A stretch of DNA of 64,000 bases from Neoechinorhynchus agilis (lineage: Eukaryota > Animalia > Acanthocephala): the NCBI GenBank assembly GCA_051530055.1, contig CM121341.1, forward strand, positions 6,798,784 to 6,862,783, given 5' to 3'. The position numbers were made by a program, and so were the translations under genes. The number at the start of each line of letters is the position of its first letter. Position 1 is the stretch's first letter. Below the pieces are notes generated by a model, which saw only the letters and a program-made list of their open reading frames with translations, made no database searches and had not been told where the DNA came from. Shown one piece after another: positions 42,018 through 54,699 of this stretch.

Positions 42018-42445
42018 TCAATAGCCCAGTTTGACGAAATAGTCACGAAGACTACCAAGATTATTGGCAACAAGTTCTGATTTGACGGTATCATCATGAG
42101 TGGCAATCAAAATACCTAAATTGGAAAAATAGAACGAAAAAAAGGATTGAGTTTTCGAGAACACGTACATGAGTTGGCTTTAAACGCAACCAGTCCAGCG
42201 GCTCCTAGTTTTAGAACGCAGAATTCACCACAAGTCCTAACAGCGATGTATCGGCCATCGCCGACTGTGATTCCATCAGAAATCTTTTCAAAATCACTCG
42301 TTCCTTGAATCAGTAACTGAACTTGGGAACTATCCATCTTAAAGTTTGAACTCTCACACCACGGATTGCCGTCCAGACCATAGATCCCAGCTTGATTTAC
42401 GCCTTGAATCTCCTTTATTTTGTCGATGTACGCTTGCCAACTCAT
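42018..42445 (-). CDS. Profilin, 2 exons (53-nt intron 42168-42116)
   Basis: MSWQAYIDKIKEIQGVNQAGIYGLDGNPW...GITVGDGRYIAVR...CILIATHDDTVKSELVANNLGSLRDYFVKLGY*. Confidence 0.95.
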
Positions 42446-43049: not shown

Positions 43050-44620
43050 GGAGGAAAAGTGAGATGAAGAGAAGGCTAGACGAGAAAGGATGCGTAAAAT
43101 GGTGGAGAATCATTCGAGTTTCTTAGAACTCGTGGAATGTATCGGCTCTTTGTTTGAACATGTAAACTTTGTATGTTCAGTCATTCAAAAAGTGGGCAGT
43201 TTAGAATGGGGGTTTTATGTGGCTCGGGAACATGAAAGCTTTCTGTTCGTGCAGAAAATTGAGATTCAAACAAAAGAAATGATCGATAGGAGTTCAGCTC
43301 ATACTTCTAAAGTTATCCGGCTAAGGATCATCACATCTTCAACTATATCTTCCTGAAGGATTTTCTCTCTCTCTCTCGATGATTAGTTTATTTGGAGATG
43401 TGATGATCAAAATCCCGGGTATAGAACATATTGAGAAATACTTCGCGATGCAAAAAATTGAGATTCAAACAAAAGAAATGATCGATAAGGGTTCAGCTCA
43501 TACCTTTAAAGTTATCCGGCTAAGAATCATGATCACCACATCTTCAGCTCTATCTTCCTGAAGGATTTTCTCTCTCTCTCGATGATTAGTTTATTTGGAG
43601 ATGTGGTGATCAAAATCCCGGGTATAGAACATATTGAGAAATTCTCAAATGCGAATTGTTACACACTCGAGTTTTATTGAACTCTTCATTGCAAATTTTC
43701 AAGGTCTCAGCCTCCTTCTGAAGCATTGTCTAGGCTGAGGCCTTCAAAAAATTGCAATAAAGAGTTCAATAAAACTCGAGTGTGTAACAATTCGCCATTG
43801 AGAATACACATCCACTCGAAGGTACAATTGGATAGAATATTGAGAAATACTTCGCGAGGAATCCTCGTTTTTTCAGTCATCTAAAAAACGGTTTTATAGT
43901 TGTTTTTTATGTGGCTCGGGAACGTGAAGGCTTTCTCTTGGTGCAGAAAGTGTAAATTCAAACAAAAGAAATGATCGATAGGAGTTCAGCTCATACTTCT
44001 AAAGTTATCCGGTTAAGGATCATGATAATCACATCTTCAACTCTATCTTCCTGAAGGATTTTCTCTCTCTCAATGATTAGTTTATTTGGAGATTTGATGA
44101 TCAAAATCCAGGATAGAACATATTGAGAAATACTTCGCGATGCAAAAAATTGAGATTCAAACAAAAGAAATGATCGATAGGAGTTCAGCTCATACTTCTA
44201 AAGTTATCCGGCTAAGGATCGTGATCCCCAAATCTCCAAGTCCATTTTCCTGAAGGATTTTCTCTCTCTCGATGATTAGTTTATTTGGAGATGTGATGAT
44301 CAAAATCCCGGGTATAAAATATTGAGAAATACTTTGCGCGAAATCCTTGCCTCAACAATAATTTAAAAAGGGTTTCAGTTGTTTTTGTGTGCCTCGGGTA
44401 AATAAAAGCTTTCTGTTGGTGCAGAAAGGTGAGATTCGAACTATAGCAATGATAGCTACAAGTTCAGTTCATACCTTTAAAGTTTTTCGGTTGAATATTA
44501 TGATCACCACTTTTCCAACTCTATGATGCCGAAGGATTGTATATTGGTGATCAATAAAATATATTTTATCCGTATCATAATGGTCATCACATTTCCAACT
44601 CTATTTTCCCGAATGATTTT
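43050..44620. repeat. Degenerate tandem array of the TOM40-intron satellite family (reverse orientation), interrupted by a hairpin MITE at 43641-43805
   Basis: Repeats of gagattcaaacaaaagaaatgatcgataggagttcagctcatacttctaaagttatccgg and cctgaaggattttctctctctcgatgattagtttatttggagat. Confidence 0.9.
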
Positions 44621-45064: not shown

Positions 45065-48000
45065 CTAGGGATCAACAAATGAAACCAAAATGTATCTAGT
45101 TCCATTCGTAGTTTGCAGTCCTTCGTGATAGTGTGTCAGTCTTCCTGGATGCATCAAAGCCCATCCCATCTTTAGATCCTTTATTACCGTGTTGTATCGA
45201 ATGAACTTGACGCCACCTCCTTGATAATCGATATTTGGTCGATTAAGAGCGATATTGATTGTATAGGTAGATGCATCATGGTGCGGACGTAGACGGTCTT
45301 GTCCATCTTTATGGTACCTTACAACAAAACTCAAAGGAGCGTTGGGCTCCGCCTTTTCATATCCTTTAAAAAGCTTGATTTGCATCGGACGAACAATGGT
45401 TTTTAGTATGTCGTGCCAGGTTTCCGCGAACCCAATTTGAGAGAAGTGGATATCGTCAGTTGGTACATTCTCGTAGCCCCCAGGAATCCGTTGATCAGTA
45501 TGCTTTCCGCCCGACCATAAGTCTGGATGAGCTTCAACTGTGGCCACTAAGTCAGTGCAAAACTTCTCGGAAAACAGGGGAAACCAAAACACATCCGGTG
45601 CTGGTTGTTGATTTCGATCGGCTTTCAGGTGAGCTGCAAATTCAGTGTGGATGTATTTTTCGGCCCATATCTAACACGTATCATAGAATGTTTCTTTAAC
45701 CGAAAATATGTCGAACCTTTTGATTTGATTTAAATTCATAAAGGTCCGGTCGAACTAGAGACGTATTGTAATTACTAACGTCAACCAATGTTCCGTAAGT
45801 GTCATAATTTGTCACGAACATGTGAATTCCCTAAATCGAAGGACAACTATCTTAAGTAGTCTGTAAAAACAGCAAGATGGTCGATTGTGAAAACGGTTTG
45901 ATCAGTAGTTCAATAACGCATTGCACTAAGCATCGAATTTAAAGGTCTCATTGAATCTTAGTAAGATCAATTTTTGTAAGTAAAATAACCTTTAGATTAA
46001 AGGTCTTTCCTCAAAGATATAAAAGGTGACATCTCTCGACATTTTCTAATCCACTCTATAAAAATAAGATATTTTATGAAAGATATATTTGTCATTAAAG
46101 TAAACAATTGCCTAATTAAAACTCACGTGAAATTTTGAGCGTGAATAATCGATAATTTGATCGGGCGTGCTAAGTCTCTTCCTCCACGATTATTCCACAA
46201 AAATATCTCTTGCTATGCTTGAAAGCGCTGGAGTAATTTTAAACAGGTTTACCTTTTTCCTTAATTCATGCGTGATACCAATATCGAAATCCACCCTTGA
46301 GTCTACTCCATCGATTTTAAGTAAGGTATCTTTACGAAACGCAACAAATTCGGATACAAATGGAACATTCCATAGACCACTGATTTAAGAAAGGAGTAAG
46401 TTTAACGGTGGTTATTAGTTACAAACCTCGTTTTGTTATCAACAATGTCAAGATAGTCTTGGGATCGAACATAGTATCCGGCATCATCCACGTCGCCCCA
46501 AAAATTACTCCAATACGTCCCCGCCCGTGTCATTAAAGGTGCTATCACTGATCTATTGATAAAAGCGCAGCGATTTAAATCTATATGAAGACAAATACTT
46601 ACTTATTCCATGAAATCAAATCTTTTAAAGTCTTTGGATTTTCGACGTGAACCGTTGATTCAAGTTGGACGTAAAATTCTATGTCAAACTTTCGTGCTTC
46701 CATGCTTAAATGGATATTATTAGCTTGAGGAGGCAATGAACGATGGAGTCTCCTTTATAGACATCCTTTAAAGTATTGTAACCATTTAAAATTTAACAAC
46801 GAACAAAAGCTAATCGCGACAACATGAAAAAGCCACTTAAAAGAATTCTATTTAATTTACATTCTCTGAAAAGTTCGTTGAATGTGAGATTTGAAAAGTA
46901 TGCAAAGTTTTCTAGAAAAAGTTGTATTAGTTCTTAAGTAGAACCGAATGAAACTACTGATTTCAGAGAATCACTATAAATTATGAAAACGTGAAATGTA
47001 ATCAAGTTCGTTCACACCTTACATTGCAGCGTTTTTGGCCTGATTTTCGAGGATATCATCTTGGGATGGTAAATACTTAATCTTCCCATAAGTATTTTTG
47101 TGAGCAGAAATAAAATCTTCGACTGTTTGATTGTGAAAATCGATCTAAATGCTAATTTTAGTTTCGCTCACGGGTCTTGCCAACGGTATACGCACTGCGT
47201 TATGTACAAACAGATATATTTTGTCTTTTGGGTAGTCGATATTTGTAAGTTTCTCGAAAAATTCATTAAGAAATGGCGTTGGCTGTTCAACGAAGACACC
47301 AATTGATACTAGTGGCAGATCTTCAAACAAATCGAGCTGAGTGTAACATCGATTGCAGAGACCGATCGAAGGTAGATAGTTCGAAACTTGATTGATTACG
47401 ATCTAAGTATGAGATGGTGATAGAGATCATTGAGGTGAAAAATAAACGCACGCTGTCATCTTCGGAGAAGAGGACCGATGAGGATGAAATGCTAGTGAGT
47501 GGTCGACTCAATTTTGTAAATATTGCGCTTTCATCGTCGACTTTTATCGTATCCTAAACCGAAAAAAGAGAGATGTCGCTTTAATTTTCCGGTTGGATAT
47601 TTAACCTTGGCTAAAGCCATCCGTATTGCATCGATTTGATTTGTGTTAAATGGCACGATGAGGGATTATATAGGGAGACCTGTATAAAAAAATTTGATTT
47701 GGTCCCGTGTTTTGGCCAATTGCTAGAAGATAATTGAAACGCTGTAAATTGTTTTAATTGGGTTGCAATTTTTTATTATCTTTCTGGGGATTAAATATCA
47801 CACACACAAAATGTTATTCGGATAAAATTTTGGCATGATCAAACGGATTGATTAAATGCGATTTTGAAAGCAGGGCACTGCTTTTTTATTTATTTATAAG
47901 AATTTCTTAATTAAACAAAAAGGAAAATGAAAACTTAATATATGTTAGTCGAGCCACGAGTGCATCAACAAATTACGGTTTGGTAAAACTTTTCCCGTCA

Positions 48001-49183
48001 GATTCTTCACTGTACCATTTACTATTAGTGAAAAATAGTTCTTTTAAAATGCTCCTTTTACCAATGACAACTGTCGGAGATTCTTTAATTGTTTTCAGAC
48101 TGCATGTCCCCTCGCGAGAACAGTTAGGCGAGGGGATTACAACAGGAGCAGTCAGTTTATCCAGGTTAAAGAGTAGCTGCTGACCACTCGAAGGAATCAA
48201 AAAGTTGAAACCTTTCAGTAAAATGATAAATTCCTTCTTTTTATCACTTTTATCATTTTTAAGGCAACTCTTGATCCATTCGTTCCCATAATTGTTTTCG
48301 TTGATGAAAGTCTAAACACAAAAGTTGTTAGAGAACGCTCATTTAAGCGAAGCAGCTTGTCGTTTGAATATTTCTCGGTAAAACAATCACGGATCGTAAA
48401 GGAAAATTCGATTCCCAAATTTTTGTTTAACCTTTAAGTTTCCCCATTGAACATTGCACACAACAGAATCGTCCAACTAATCAGGTGTTTTTACGTTATT
48501 TTAATCGAACTAATTGGTTTTTGTAAAGAATTTGTTCACGGATATATGTATTTTTTGTGATGAGAACAGATTGATTTGTCGATATGTGAGGAGGTACTGG
48601 GGAATGTGATTGGAAATATTGATTAGAAGCCTTCATCACTCGGTAAATGATTTTTTCGATTAAAGACGTTATGTGAACCTCGTTTTATGGTAATCATCAG
48701 TTTGTTAGTTAGCGTTGATCGAGGTTCGAAACGTCTTTAATCGAAAAAATCATTTACCGAGTGATGAAGGCTTCTAAACAATAATTACAGAGATTGATTT
48801 ATTATCGTCAATATTTCGTTCGTCTCATCGGACGTCTTCAGGTTATTTGCTAGTGTTCACGGCTTCAGATCGAGTGAAGTCCGACGAGACGGACGAAATA
48901 TTGGGAATTGATGTGTTTCTCTTAGGTCAAAATACCTCGAGTGGTCTATAGTAGAAATGCAAGTGAAATTGGAGACAAACCTTAGCATCATAACCATTCA
49001 TTGCTAAAGTAGATTCCAATCTTCGTTGGTTATCAAACTCTGTTTGATTTGCGCATATTAAAACGCTGATTGACTGCGTAGCTAAAAACTCGATTTCTTA
49101 ACAAAAGAGCATATAAAAGAGAGAGAGTAAATACCTGCAATTATTGCGTAAAAAACCAATATCGATCCAATCAAATAGCTCAT
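45065..49183 (-). CDS. PLOD paralog A: intact Fe(II)/2OG lysyl hydroxylase domain, degenerate N-terminal glycosyltransferase domain
   Basis: Signal peptide [17 protein letters not shown]; [19 protein letters not shown]; [20 protein letters not shown]; [16 protein letters not shown]...[12 protein letters not shown]...[10 protein letters not shown]. At least one middle exon (~47600) not resolved. Confidence 0.9.
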
Positions 49184-49252
49184 CTAGAAATAGACGGTCA
49201 CTTATTTTACCGGAGCTCAATGAATAATTATTTTTATTTCACAATGGAATCA

Positions 49253-52200
49253 TTAGGGATCAATGAATGACACTAAAATGTACCGCGTTCCTTCGGTAAT
49301 TTTTAGACCTTCATGGATGTGGGTAAGTCTACCCGGAAACATGACCGGCCATCCAATTCTTGTGTCCACCAATGAACAATTATATCGAATAAATTTAACA
49401 CCACCAGCCTTATAATCAATACCGGCTCGATTTAGAGCAATATCCAGGGTATATGTAGAAGCGTCGTGGTGTGCTCTGAGATGATCTTGAATAGAAAGAT
49501 CGTACCTAACCACAAATGTCAAAGGAGCTTGTGGTGGATCTTTATAATATCCTAAAAATATCCTCATCTGCAAGGGCTGAATAAATTGTTTAAGAAAATG
49601 GTGCCAATGATCCTGCCATCCGATTTGCGTCATGTGGATATCGTCAGTCGGTACGTTCTCATATCCTCCTGGAATGCGACCGTCTGTGTGTTTTCCCAGT
49701 GACCATTGCCCAGTGTTGTTGACGGTCTCGATCATCTCCCTTGCAAATCTTTCCGATAATAGGGGATACCAAAACACATCTGAGCAAGGCTGAATCTTGA
49801 AATTGAAGAAAAATGACTTAAAATCTATTGACCCTACCTGTTGAATAAAGAACTTATCGGTCTCAATCTCCACACCAACCAAATCGCTCAAATATTCTCG
49901 TCTCCACTGCTCCAAAGGAATCTCTTTTTGTTTCGTATACTCTAAGAATTTTGGATGTAAATATCGTACTTTCCAATCTTCGAGATTACTAAAAATTTCA
50001 TAAAGTTCAGGGTGAAGCGCTGTTGAGTTGAAACTTTCAGGATCGACCAAATGACCGTAACTGTGGAGATTAGTCGCCCACATGAAAATTCCAGAATCTC
50101 GCAAATATTTTGTAAGTTCCATGTCTTCATCGATTTCCTTCTCTTTCCACCCACCTGCCTTTTCAAGGCGGTCAACGATTGCTCGTTTTAAAAGAATAAA
50201 CGATGAAATATGTGGAACATTCCACATACCCACTCGTTCATCTTCAACGATCGATACATAATCGCTTGATCGCAAATAATATCCGTTTTCGTCAATCGCT
50301 CCCCAAAAGTTTGAGAATAGTCGACTGGGTCTTCGCAGTATAGGAGCAATCACCGATCGATTAAGTCCTATGAGGAAGGCAAGCGTCTCAGGTTCATCAA
50401 TGTGGGCAGTAGCGTCCATTATAAGAAGATAGTCACAGTTCATACGTCGACATGATTTGATAAAATGGTTCCTGGCGTCCTTTTGGTTCAATTTCTTGTC
50501 TCCATGATGTTCATATAGTCGATAGGATTTTTTTAGTTTACCAGCTTCGAAAAAATGTTTGATTTGTTTGTCATGAATTGGAGCACTATTATGAATTACG
50601 AGACCAATTTTGGATTGTGGGTAAGAAATGCTAGTCAGTTTTGTAAGAAATTCTTCAAAGAAGGGCGTTTCGGATTCAGCGAGGACGCCAATTAAGACCG
50701 ATGGCCATTTGTTTCGCTATGATAGGAACACATAATTTCAATGAAGATTAAAGTGTCCTACTCACGTTCACAGCTTCCAAGTCAAATACATTATTTTCGC
50801 AGTGACGGCAACCGAAATTAGGAATCCAGCGTTTTGCCAAATAATTGGAAAATTGGTTGAACAGTAGCTGCACAGGTAAAGCGAAAATAAAGATGGAGAG
50901 AGGTTAAGTTTTGGTTAAAAACTTTTACAAACTAGCGGAGCCATCGATGTGAATTTGAGACGAAAATGATAAAAACGAAAATAAGGGGGAAACTTGAACC
51001 GATTATTTTGAAATGGTGAATGAGGAAAAGTTTAAGATAGTTTGAACCAGAGAAGTGTTGAATGATTAATAATTGGAAAGGATGAATGGAGAAAAATGGA
51101 TATAAAAAGATTAGAAGTTCGAAAGGAGGGGAAGGAGGGAAAGTTTAAGATAGCTTGAACCAGAGAAGCGTTGAATGATTAATAATTGGAAAGGATGAAT
51201 AGAGAAAAATGGATATAAAAAGGTTAGAAGTTCGAAAGGAGGGGAAGGAGGGGAAGTTTAAGATAGTTTGAACCAGAGAAGTGTTGAATGATTAATAATT
51301 GGAAAGGATGAATAGAGAAAAATGGATATAAAAAGGTTAGAATTTCGAAAGGAGGGGAAGGAGGGAAAGTTTAAAGGAAATAAAAACAAAAAAAGGAGAC
51401 AATGAAAATGATAAGAGAATGGGAAGTTGTGGAATGAGAGGAGGATAAGAAAGCGAGTGTAGTAAGCGCATCGAAAAGGAGGAATAGAGAAAATTTGTAA
51501 AGTGAAAATGATCCTAAAGAAGGAAACTAGAATCGGAATGAGCGTATTGTGGAGCACGAAACGGGTTAAAGGATCAAAATGAGAATAGTGAACATTGTTC
51601 ATGGGAGAAGATGATCGAAATTGCAGCAGCAGAAAGGTCGTCCGGTCTTTTAGTTTTGACGGGTAGAAGGTTGGTAAAGAGCAATACAATAAACAATTGG
51701 ACGAAGAGAATTTTTGTACAAATATTTAAATTAAAAAATTATAAGACTGTACAGAATTATGCCGAACCTACCTTAGAAGGGCCATTTCCATGCAAAATGG
51801 ACGGACGAGTTCCAGATTGGAAATTGGTAAGAATTGAGGTAGCGTTTTCAAACGTGATCTGCAAATCTTTTTGAGCTCCATTCAGGCTTTGAAAGATCTC
51901 AGACTTTGTATCGAGTCCAACGTCCTTCTGTCCCTTACGTTTCGCCGCATTAAGATAGAAATTTGTATACGCCAACTGATCATCATCAGCGTCCTTAATC
52001 GACAATGAGTTTATTAAATTTATAACATCATCTTTATAGCCCATGAAAAGGCCAGAGTTTAGGAACCGACTTGCGTTCTCGGAAACTTCTGGATATTTTG
52101 CCTAAATAGAATAGAGTTACGACAATTTCAAACGAGAATCTTTATATTACTTCGAGCGTTTTGTCTGGCCAGCAGAATGTTTCTGCGGAAAAGATAATGC

Positions 52201-53231
52201 GTTTGTCGAATGTGACGAATTTTCTAACAATTTCATCGGGTTCATCGTTGAATATCACATCGTATCTGAGGAACTGTTTAACAAAAAAAACTCTATTTGT
52301 TCTGATAAACATACCCGTCAGTGTAGAGAACGAGAGTCTCATTCACGGATTTAATCTCATTTAAATGCCGTTTGAGAATGTTTATTTTCTGACCACCTCC
52401 AACGCTCGTTTTGACATCACCTCCTTTCCATTTTTCATTCAAACCAAAAACCTATTTTAGACAACAAAAAATTTAAAGTCTCTCACAATACTTTATATTT
52501 TTTTGGCGGAAAAAAATGAACTAAATCCGATTGTTTTCGGAGACACAATATTGTGTCAAAATGTCGATATTTGAGGAAAAAGTTATTGTTTAGTTAAGTC
52601 TTCATCAAGCGGTAAATAATTTTTTGCACTAAAGACGTTCTGTGAAACTTTACGAACTTGTTTTTCGAGCATTTCAATTGATTGAAAACCGCTTTTATTA
52701 CCGTCTAAAGCTTGTTTTCAAAAAAATCAAAAAGGAACCATTCAATCGGCGTAAACTCGGAAATAAATATTAATTTTTAATATTTAAAAGCATACAAGAA
52801 AACTGGTGATGAATAGGACACAAGGTTCGCAGAACGTCTTTAGTGCAAAAAAGTATTTACCTAGTGATGAAGACTTCCCTAAACAATAATAAGATTGTAA
52901 ATTAGAATCAAGTCGATTGGGATACGCCTTGCCGAAAACAATAGGATTTAATGAAAATTCCTTCAATTTTTCCGCCATATAAAAAAATGAACAATGTTCA
53001 AAAACCCAATACCTTATAGTCGTAATCATAGAAGTCAAGACTCTCTCTAAGCAATTCGAACCCGTCCGTTTCATCTGTCGCAACAGTGAAAACAAGAAGG
53101 TCTTTGCCGTCTGAACATGTTCAATTAATATTTTCTTAGTACAAAATAACTTAGCACTTACTTAAAATCCCGTTTACGAGCGAACAACAGGCGAACAGTA
53201 GCACAACAACAACATTGGTTGTCAAGTTCAT
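49253..53231 (-). CDS. PLOD paralog B: canonical multifunctional lysyl hydroxylase/glycosyltransferase (LH3-like)
   Basis: LLVFTVATDETDG, WKGGDVKTSVGGGQKINIL, YTDGYDVIF, FSAETFCWPD, RFLNSGLFMG, DADDDQLAY, ILHGNGPSK, RAHHDASTY, PGRLTHIHEG, RYILVSFIDP*. Confidence 0.95.
51028..51372. repeat. Three ~113-bp purine-rich tandem units in a PLOD-B intron
   Basis: aagtttaagatagtttgaaccagagaagtgttgaatgattaataattggaaaggatgaat...gaaaggaggggaaggaggg, three times. Confidence 0.95.
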
Positions 53232-53617
53232 TTAAAAAGAAGACGGCAGTGTACGGTTTCTAAAACGCAAAAATCCGGACGTAAAAGCGATATTCCTTCA
53301 GAACAAGTTTCTGTGTATCTACATCGCAGTATCCTCCCATCTTCCTTCGTTATAGACAAGAGACGCTATATTCCCCCTCCCGTAGACGCCAGAGAATAAG
53401 TCGTAGAATAGAAGAGACATTAAGACCACGGAACACTACTCGATTCAGCATAATTTTTACAATGTATGCGCACTGCTTATGCTGAGAATTTGCTAGCTGG
53501 GCCAACCAAAAGCAAGGCTGTATTGGCGCAAAAAATCAACATAATTTTTTCTTTTGGCTGCCTGGATGCATGTCGAACCTTGGGTTTTGTGAAAATAAAC
53601 ACATTGAAACAAACATA

Positions 53618-54425
53618 GAAATGATTTGTGGACTTTGCTATAAAATACAAGGGGAAAATCTTCTCTCTTTTAACGCGACAAAAAATTGCCAGAGAAATGC
53701 TAAAGTTCCAACTTTCTGCGCGATGATTTTTGGATAAAAAAAACATAACGGCCGACTTTTAATAAAAGGGTTGAAACTCCCTTTTTCAGAAATGATTTGT
53801 GGACTTTTCTATCAAATACAAGGGGAAAATCTTCTATCTTTTAACACGACAAAAAATTGCCAGAGAAATGCTAAAGTTCGAACTTTCTGCGCGATGATTT
53901 TTGGATAAAAAACACAACGGCCGACTTTTAATAAAAGGGTTGAAACTCCCTTTTTCAGAAATGATTTGTGGACTTTGCTATCAAATACAAGGGGAAAATC
54001 TTCTCTCTTTTAACACGATCAAAAAATTGCCAGAGAAATGCTAAAGTTCGAACTTTCTGCGCGATGATTTTTGGATAAAAAACATAACGGCCGACTTTCA
54101 ATTCAAGGGTTGAAACTCCCTTTTCAGAAATGATTTGTGGACTTTTCTATCAAATACAAGGGGAAAATCTTCTCTCTTTTAACGCGACAAAAATTGCCAA
54201 AGAAATGCTTAAGTTCGAACTTTCTGCGCGATGATTTTTGGATAAAAAACACAACGGCCGACTTTTAATAAAAGGGTTGAAACTCCCTTTTTCAAAAATG
54301 ATTTGTGGACTTTTCTATCAAATACAAGGGGAAAATCTTCTCTCTTTTAACACGACAAAAAATTGCCAAAGAAATGCTAAAGTTCGAACTTTCTGCGCGA
54401 TGATTTTTGGATAAAAAAACATAAC
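53618..54425. repeat. Tandem satellite, ~5 units of ~170 bp, upstream of PLOD-B
   Basis: gaaatgatttgtggacttt...atacaaggggaaaatcttc...ttctgcgcgatgatttttggataaaaa...gggttgaaactccctttt repeats. Confidence 0.96.
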
Positions 54426-54699
54426 GGTCGCCTAATTCTACTTTTAATCGAAGGGTGTATTTTTCTCTTAATTCGACCAAATACAAATTCCCTTTGCCCT
54501 TGCTAATAATTGTAATTCTCACGTCCAAATAGAATTTCAGTTTCAATTAGCGATGCTTGATTCAGAAATAGATTTACCTTGAAAATTTTCGGCCTTTTCG
54601 TTGGCCTTCTTTAGTCAATCTATTTCTTAATCAAACATCGCTAATTGAAACTGAAACTATAATGAATAATTTCTTTCCAAATAGAATTAATCGAAGAAA

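Follow-up and report, generated by a model that had tools for sequence, protein, structure and literature searches.

Tandem PLOD genes in Neoechinorhynchus agilis: a predicted LH3-like enzyme beside a paralogue with a putatively eroded glycosyltransferase region

Two PLOD genes in tandem

In a 64,000-nucleotide stretch of the genome of the acanthocephalan Neoechinorhynchus agilis (GCA_051530055.1, contig CM121341.1, positions 6,798,784 to 6,862,783 of the forward strand; hereafter the window, to which all coordinates refer), two PLOD (lysyl hydroxylase) genes lie head to tail on the minus strand. The window is eukaryotic in character, with a GC content of 34-43% and short GT-AG introns. A minus-strand open reading frame (ORF) of 412 codons (49253-50491) matched PLOD/lysyl hydroxylases across Metazoa, and tblastn searches with five PLOD homologues recovered two colinear sets of exons on this strand. 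The upstream gene, here called copy B, begins with the first base of its ATG at 53231, and the downstream gene, copy A, ends with the last base of its stop codon at 45065. Both limits are exactly those given in a prediction made earlier from the sequence alone (the original prediction), which had described the pair as tandem duplicates. Most exons of the downstream set were 97-100% identical to the N. agilis protein ACOME3_001594 (tblastn), and this protein was recovered entirely from residue 6 onward by exact mapping on the exons of copy A. The GenBank annotation holds copy B as a single gene and divides copy A (49183-45065) between ACOME3_001595 and ACOME3_001594 (Table 1); the N. agilis gene models were produced with BRAKER 2.1.5 using RNA-seq hints (PMC12690905).

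For copy B, splice-site enumeration led to an eight-exon model, the 755-aa translation of which was identical to GenBank KAL7675333.1. The protein aligned with human LH3 from residue 34 to the C-terminus (E = 6.8e-183) and contained the Pfam glycosyltransferase (GT) domain GT_PLOD (PF25342) at residues 26-270, above the gathering score (312.7 bits, E = 1.8e-93). The LH3 hallmarks predicted for this copy, YTDGY^DVIF, DADDDQ and HGNG (a caret marks an intron), were all found, the first of them interrupted by a 49-nt intron (52314-52266). Residues W75, D112, Y114, D115, W145, D190, D191 and H253 (LH3 numbering throughout) were all kept, and the poly-Asp loop showed a single D-to-A change, at 188. 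The linker with its CxxC disulphide and the accessory (AC) domain aligned with those of LH3. In the lysyl hydroxylase (LH) domain, the Fe2+ ligands H667, D669 and H719 were present together with the 2-oxoglutarate-binding R729, and the Pfam domain 2OG-FeII_Oxy scored above cutoff in both copies. The N-terminus, MNLTTNVVVVLLFACCSLVNG, was judged by eye to resemble a signal peptide. Taken at the level of sequence, copy B is a complete LH3-like enzyme of the ancestral type.

The original prediction had also ascribed to copy B an insertion of about 20 aa before QPCSDV. This segment proved to be an in-frame, stop-free intron of 48 nt (Table 1), a length within the range of the other short introns of the gene (48-51 nt). 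Its excision gives ...DKFFIQQ^PCSDVFWYPL, colinear with LH3, Pomphorhynchus and other homologues, and it is likewise spliced out in the GenBank protein.

Between 47553 and 45065, copy A has eight exons, which run from the end of the GT region through the CxxC linker and the AC domain into the LH domain; they are free of stop codons, and the GT-AG introns between them are intact. Residues 214-677 of copy A aligned continuously with LH3 263-738 in phmmer (E = 2.3e-130), with GLCNRC of copy A corresponding to GCGFCN. The hydroxylase motif H-x-D...H...R was intact as predicted, H667, D669, H719 and R729 being present in this copy as in copy B. Conservation was also closely similar between the two: against 62 other PLODs, copy A showed 36% identity in the AC domain and 56% in the LH domain, and copy B 36% and 54%, respectively. 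The branch of copy A was not longer than that of copy B in trees. Judged by these values, the AC-LH part of copy A is clearly under purifying selection. That copy A as a whole might be a pseudogene or otherwise non-functional could be argued from its disrupted N-terminal region and from the failure to find an orthologue, both described below; however, eight AC/LH exons with intact introns and every Fe/2-oxoglutarate residue in place, and a conservation and branch length equal to those of copy B despite a duplication older than the split between Eoacanthocephala and Palaeacanthocephala, make this scarcely credible.

Table 1. Exons, annotated genes and related features of the PLOD pair (window coordinates; a caret marks an intron position)
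Feature	Coordinates	Strand	Size	Remarks
Copy B exons	53231-53162, 53110-53013, 52451-52315, 52265-52151, 52101-51772, 50867-50766, 50716-49838, 49789-49253	minus		From splice-site enumeration; stop codon included
Copy B GT-domain exons	51772-53110	minus		W75, glycoloop GGDVKTSVGGGQKINI, DxxD (TDGY^DV), CWPD (W145), DADDDQ, HGNG (H253)
Copy B in-frame intron	49837-49790	minus	48 nt	GTAGGG...ATTCAG, stop-free
B-A spacer	49184-49252	minus	69 nt	From the stop codon of B to the putative ATG of A
Copy A exon 1	49183-49135	minus		ATG and signal-peptide-like hydrophobic stretch (by eye); followed by a phase-1 intron, as is exon 1 of B
Copy A exon 2	49081-48981	minus		Counterpart of LLVFTVATDETDGFELLRESLDFYDYDYK of B; ends at the position of a phase-0 intron of B
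Copy A exon 3	48311-47977	minus		Eroded GT core with LLKGFNFLI and SEESDGK; uninterrupted where B has two introns
Copy A mini-exon (conjectural)	47722-47680	minus	43 nt	Putative; restores the frame between exon 3 and the exon at 47553
Annotated first exon of ACOME3_001594	47620-47606	minus	5 codons	MALAK; no signal peptide
Copy A exon with FSEDDS	47553-47452	minus		C-terminal GT remnant; ends at the phase-0 intron of HGNGPSK^LLFNQFSNYL of B
Copy A linker (CxxC), AC and LH exons	47402-47196, 47144-47023, 46704-46603, 46552-46427, 46379-46253, 45830-45717, 45670-45065	minus		Stop codon included; map equals P0039 exactly
ACOME3_001596	53231-49253	minus	755 aa	GenBank gene; copy B
ACOME3_001595 (P0135)	49183-47973	minus	162 aa	GenBank gene; 5' part of copy A
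ACOME3_001594 (P0039)	47620-45065	minus	506 aa	GenBank gene; 3' part of copy A

The glycosyltransferase region of copy A

The GT site of LH3 is made up of the Mn2+ ligands D112, D115 and H253, the UDP-stacking residues W75 and Y114, a glycoloop (G72-G87), the gating residue W145 and a poly-Asp loop with D190/D191 (Scietti et al. 2018, PMC6082870). The exons of copy A that correspond to this region (exons 1-3) encode the GenBank 162-aa protein, with 100% identity over residues 1-162. In the alignments, copy B carries D112 and D115, whereas copy A has K and N in their place, in keeping with the loss of the DxxD site read by the original prediction, and F in place of Y114. Copy A has LLKGFNFLI at the position of LYTDGYDVIF in copy B, and this segment lacks any acidic residue. 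Its glycoloop is about 12 aa shorter, and CSRE/TCS stands for FCWPD, with loss of W145.

The remaining determinants were more difficult to place. In four out of four BLASTP alignments, a gap of 18-23 aa in copy A removed the segment bearing HGNG, and FSEDDS of copy A was found opposite the sequence "FSxKDS" of homologues. The C-terminal GT remnant of copy A contains no His at all, so that none is available at H253. The counterpart of the poly-Asp loop was ambiguous, as hhalign paired SEESDGK with DADDDQ and MAFFT paired KELFFTN with DQLFYTN; at best, the loop would read E-E-S-D-G. The strings to which the original prediction pointed are therefore present and its assignment of the DxxD site holds; its equation of FSEDDS with HGNG was imprecise and that of SEESDGK with DADDDQ ambiguous. 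Overall, every GT determinant that could be aligned appears to be lost in copy A, and we infer that the protein would be unable to bind Mn2+ and UDP-sugar in the manner of LH3, whichever alignment is adopted.

The alignments obtained indicate a homology of this region to the GT domain that is weak but probably real. Comparison of the N-terminus of copy A with a GT profile of 75 sequences in hhalign gave P values of 0.011 and 0.0058 for alignments that stay colinear through 157-212 columns, and the score of copy A was attained by only one of 300 shuffled sequences. MAFFT independently placed the N-terminus in the same register. BLASTP of the 506-aa protein (P0039) against full PLODs reached into the segment of copy A matching IKLDxKSxIF of the homologues. 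Three introns occupy the same position in copies A and B and agree in phase: one follows the signal peptide (phase 1), one follows YD(A/Y)K (phase 0) and one precedes (I/L)xxNQxSNYL (phase 0). Hydrophobic strands were also recognisable between the two copies (ISVLICAN; a strand answering to LVLYTDGYDVIF; and PVVI for RIIF). The identity of the N-terminal region of copy A to any PLOD GT domain was 17-18%, versus 42% for copy B.

A further stretch at 47667-47606 (minus strand, frame 2), which includes the annotated MALAK start, resembles LFYTKxYLDxxLRK of the family and may be a frame-shifted relic of an ancestral GT exon. It was considered as a coding exon joined upstream and was rejected, there being no AG acceptor between it and the TAA that precedes it.

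Age of the duplication and family context

A neighbour-joining tree was built from 442 well-aligned AC and LH columns of 27 sequences with 100 bootstraps. Copy B grouped with Pomphorhynchus laevis in 100/100 replicates, copies A and B together with Pomphorhynchus in 86/100, and copies A and B alone in 0/100. This pattern indicates that the duplication predates the split between Eoacanthocephala and Palaeacanthocephala. Over the columns of the tree copies A and B are 48% identical, which is about the same as either of them versus insects or vertebrates. The duplication appears to be specific to Acanthocephala and, on the topology of this tree, is independent of the vertebrate LH1/2/3 split, as had been anticipated. 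The phylogeny proposed as a check thus recovered an acanthocephalan clade; the two copies themselves never formed a sister pair, as copy B pairs with Pomphorhynchus. The accompanying premise that invertebrates usually have one PLOD is in line with the single PLOD of the fly (PMC3044864). Copy B resembles this LH3-like Drosophila gene, dPlod, whereas N. agilis has a tandem pair.

The P. laevis locus (WNNJ02000912.1) holds one B-like PLOD over ~35 kb and is cut by the end of the contig, beyond which a tandem copy A may lie. As copy B of N. agilis spans 4 kb, intron sizes differ greatly between the two acanthocephalan genomes. Intron content also differs between the two N. agilis copies. The AC-LH region is interrupted by seven introns of 46-422 nt in copy A (45065-47553) and by one of 48 nt within 1.46 kb in copy B (49253-50716), and the GT core of copy B contains a pair of short introns (52314-52266 and 52150-52102) that have no counterpart in copy A. 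This unequal content points to differential loss or gain of introns after the duplication.

Among 196 PLOD homologues of at least 600 aa, the GT residues were almost invariant, and a degenerate GT domain was seen in ~2%. The Loa loa protein (P0049) reads S-D-F-N-gap-G-N-L at W75/D112/Y114/D115/W145/D190/D191/H253, and proteins from Spirometra (P0119) and some Rotaria (P0002, P0004, P0011, P0243) also lack several of these residues. In all of these the LH domain is conserved, as in copy A; unlike copy A, they have a GT_PLOD domain of normal length that is detectable with Pfam, even though the Loa loa and Spirometra versions of it share as little as 18-27% identity with the family. To judge from these sequences, degeneration of the GT domain is rare among PLODs and not unique to copy A. 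What is particular to copy A is a GT region eroded beyond Pfam detection in tandem with an intact paralogue. The homologues with loss of GT residues come mostly from parasitic worms, a hint of repeated relaxation of GT function.

In comparison with human LH3/PLOD3 (6FXK, 6TEZ, 8ZGC), copy B shares the GT-AC-LH architecture and all described GT and Fe/2-oxoglutarate residues. Copy A shares the AC domain, the LH domain and the CxxC of the linker, and differs in an N-terminal region that is ~35-50 aa shorter and devoid of GT determinants. The closest functional analogy is the vertebrate division between LH1/LH2 and LH3, in which copy B would be like LH3 and copy A presumably specialised in hydroxylation. 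Unlike copy A, vertebrate LH1 and LH2 have kept a recognisable GT domain (PLOD1 and PLOD2 carry PF25342), and LH2 has been reported to glucosylate collagen VI (PMC11957695). A precedent for copy A exists within the family itself: the AC domain of LH3 has a GT fold regarded as having lost catalysis (PMC6082870), that is, a GT-fold domain retained as a non-catalytic accessory. The AC domain, however, is old and well conserved and occurs in every PLOD, whereas the remnant in copy A is lineage-specific, poorly conserved and putatively translated.

Copy A as one gene or two

We propose that copy A is an old paralogue, a single gene for a constrained hydroxylase in which an eroded GT region precedes the AC-LH part, glycosyl transfer being left to copy B; based on sequence comparison, we assign this a probability of roughly 0.58. 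ACOME3_001594 and ACOME3_001595 are then probably one gene annotated as two. Copy B would consist of a signal peptide, a Mn2+/UDP-sugar GT domain, the AC domain and a Fe2+/2-oxoglutarate LH domain. Copy A would have been separate before the split of Neoechinorhynchus and Pomphorhynchus and would have stayed under constraint as a lysyl hydroxylase, while its GT domain, freed from catalytic constraint, would have eroded: all three Mn2+ ligands would have disappeared, together with the UDP-stacking residues, the glycoloop and the gating Trp, and two segments would have been deleted. Most likely it would form one gene of ~677 aa, in which AC-LH is preceded by a signal peptide and a Rossmann-like remnant devoid of catalysis. 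Hydroxylation would be the only activity of such a protein, with copy B (and enzymes of the COLGALT type) left to glycosylate collagen. This proposal builds on direct observations of how the genes are ordered, where their exons lie, which motif states they show, how conserved each domain is and how old the duplication is. In-frame splicing of the N-terminal exons of copy A, its hydroxylase activity and its lack of GT activity are what we infer from them.

The survival of an ORF and of detectable similarity since an old duplication argues against neutral decay. Exon 3 is open for 112 codons, and a length of at least 111 codons was reached by only 43 of the 7069 stop-to-stop ORFs of the window; such an open frame is therefore unlikely to arise by chance, although this is not conclusive. 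When stops were penalised, the in-frame codon-usage score of exon 3 was the best of the six frames. A consensus-like candidate donor, CC^GTAATT, overlaps the stop codon TAA with which the annotated frame of this exon ends (47975-47973).

Several observations weigh against the proposal, the weak point of which is the link between the eroded region and the rest of the protein. The end of exon 3 reads TTT ACC AAA CCG TAA, so the ORF of copy A does not stay open as the original prediction had claimed. Made by BRAKER with RNA-seq hints, the annotation closes a gene at this TAA and opens a second one downstream, yielding proteins of 162 and 506 aa. Between exon 3 and the exon at 47553 we found 10 in-frame paths with two introns, none of them decisive; the preferred path uses the 43-nt exon at 47722-47680, the coding score of which was uninformative, and a weak GTCTCC donor. 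With stops excluded, exon 3 scored 0.087 per codon, in between the means of 0.257 for coding and -0.055 for non-coding sequence, and the contrast between frames was weak.

To these are added the searches for similarity and structure. GT_PLOD was not matched in full-length copy A or in the 162-aa protein, even at E <= 10, and phmmer of copy A against LH3 aligned nothing before residue 214 of copy A. When our own GT hidden Markov model (75 sequences) was run on the six-frame ORFs of the window (3379), the exons of copy B scored strongly and exon 3 of copy A gave E = 4. The N-terminal 240 aa of copy A, searched against 1.84 billion representative proteins, matched only their own 162-aa annotation. 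In the databases searched, an orthologue of copy A was not found among the 16 matches to the full-length model, none of which exceeded 45% identity, or among the 1923 matches to the 506-aa protein, all of which were at or below 48%. AlphaFold2 modelling of the 162-aa protein gave a pLDDT (predicted local distance difference test) of 37 from the single sequence. With an alignment, in which MAFFT had misaligned the last ~15 residues, it rose to 69 (70-89 over residues 1-110, with a beta-alpha-beta arrangement), a value that is alignment-driven. A Foldseek search of this model against the PDB returned no match at E <= 0.001, LH3 ranking 12-16 with a TM (template modelling) score of 0.41-0.43. The structure prediction suggested as a check thus lent the proposal no help.

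The annotation may alternatively be correct as it stands. The eroded GT region would then be a 162-aa secreted leftover or an untranslated relic, and the AC-LH part would have a start of its own. The TAA and the two genes called with RNA-seq hints speak for this, as do the intermediate coding potential of exon 3, the lack of a unique in-frame link and GT-like relics that seem to be spread over more than one frame, such as the frame-2 stretch that precedes the annotated ATG. The 506-aa product, however, has no signal peptide or other N-terminal hydrophobic stretch (by eye), yet it has a CxxC linker of endoplasmic-reticulum type and a conserved hydroxylase core. No alternative signal-peptide exon was found between 47976 and 47560, the only signal-peptide-like exon upstream being that at 49183, and the MALAK start contributes only five codons; this exon is probably an artefact of gene splitting. 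Apart from MALAK, the 506-aa model begins with an exon that derives from the GT domain. Moreover, since the duplication is old, neutral exons should by now have lost both an open frame of 112 codons and any similarity that could be aligned. We consider the annotated arrangement unlikely, though a serious candidate. A search of the text supplement of the N. agilis transcriptome paper (PMC12690905) revealed no PLOD entry.

Copy A could also be one gene whose mRNA skips the eroded core, by direct splicing of exon 2 to the exon at 47553, to give a signal peptide, a short stub and AC-LH with no GT-like domain. This junction is in frame (phase 0 on both sides), and skipping would explain why the stop is tolerated and why the coding signal is weak in exon 3. 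The skipped exon is nevertheless open for 112 codons, lies in register with the GT profile and was included in the BRAKER model, and we regard this arrangement as improbable.

Copy B has lost nothing and keeps the hallmarks of both GT and LH, so that the loss is one-sided and falls on copy A. The division of labour by subfunctionalisation that had been suggested for the pair, which would call for complementary losses, is thus not what the motifs indicate. Of the pseudo-glycosyltransferase domain suggested for copy A, the loss of the GT determinants and an AC-LH part conserved as well as that of copy B were borne out, and its joint translation with AC-LH is putative. The heterodimer of copies A and B that had been raised as a possibility is purely speculative. 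A stronger version, in which the eroded region is a translated and selected pseudo-GT domain re-purposed, for example, for binding of substrate or partner, and in which copy A is a hydroxylase-only enzyme co-expressed with copy B from one transcription unit, seems to us quite doubtful on the present comparisons. If true, it would represent a convergent and more extreme form of the LH1/2-LH3 specialisation, together with a hint of operon-like organisation in Acanthocephala.

The spacer between the two copies contains an AATAAA (49238-49233) and, immediately in front of the ATG of copy A, a TTTCTAG that resembles a splice acceptor. In this it looks like the intercistronic region of operons resolved by spliced-leader (SL) trans-splicing. 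SL trans-splicing has been reported in bdelloid rotifers and not in Brachionus (PMC1925144), and we found no literature report of it in Acanthocephala.

Should copy A work as a hydroxylase while its GT domain is dead and shrunken, it would offer a natural experiment on which parts of LH3 are dispensable for lysyl hydroxylation, as well as an independent invertebrate parallel to vertebrate LH1/LH2 versus LH3. As biology the case is incremental: the family and the fold are well known, and so is such a fate for a paralogue.

Tandem repeats lie within the pair and on both sides of it. Intron 5 of copy B (904 nt) contains a 113-bp tandem repeat (51018-51374, 3.2 copies, 95% identity) that is purine-rich on the plus strand and accounts for a spike in GC skew of +0.25 at 50001-52000. 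Upstream of copy B, a 169-bp unit is repeated in 4.8 copies (53617-54427), and downstream of copy A there are two arrays of ~200-bp units, roughly two copies each, at 43250-43642 and 43956-44338. The arrays flanking the pair yield many short repeated ORFs. Beyond copy A, the annotation continues downstream with the gene of a 124-aa profilin (PF00235) at ~42018-42445, also on the minus strand.

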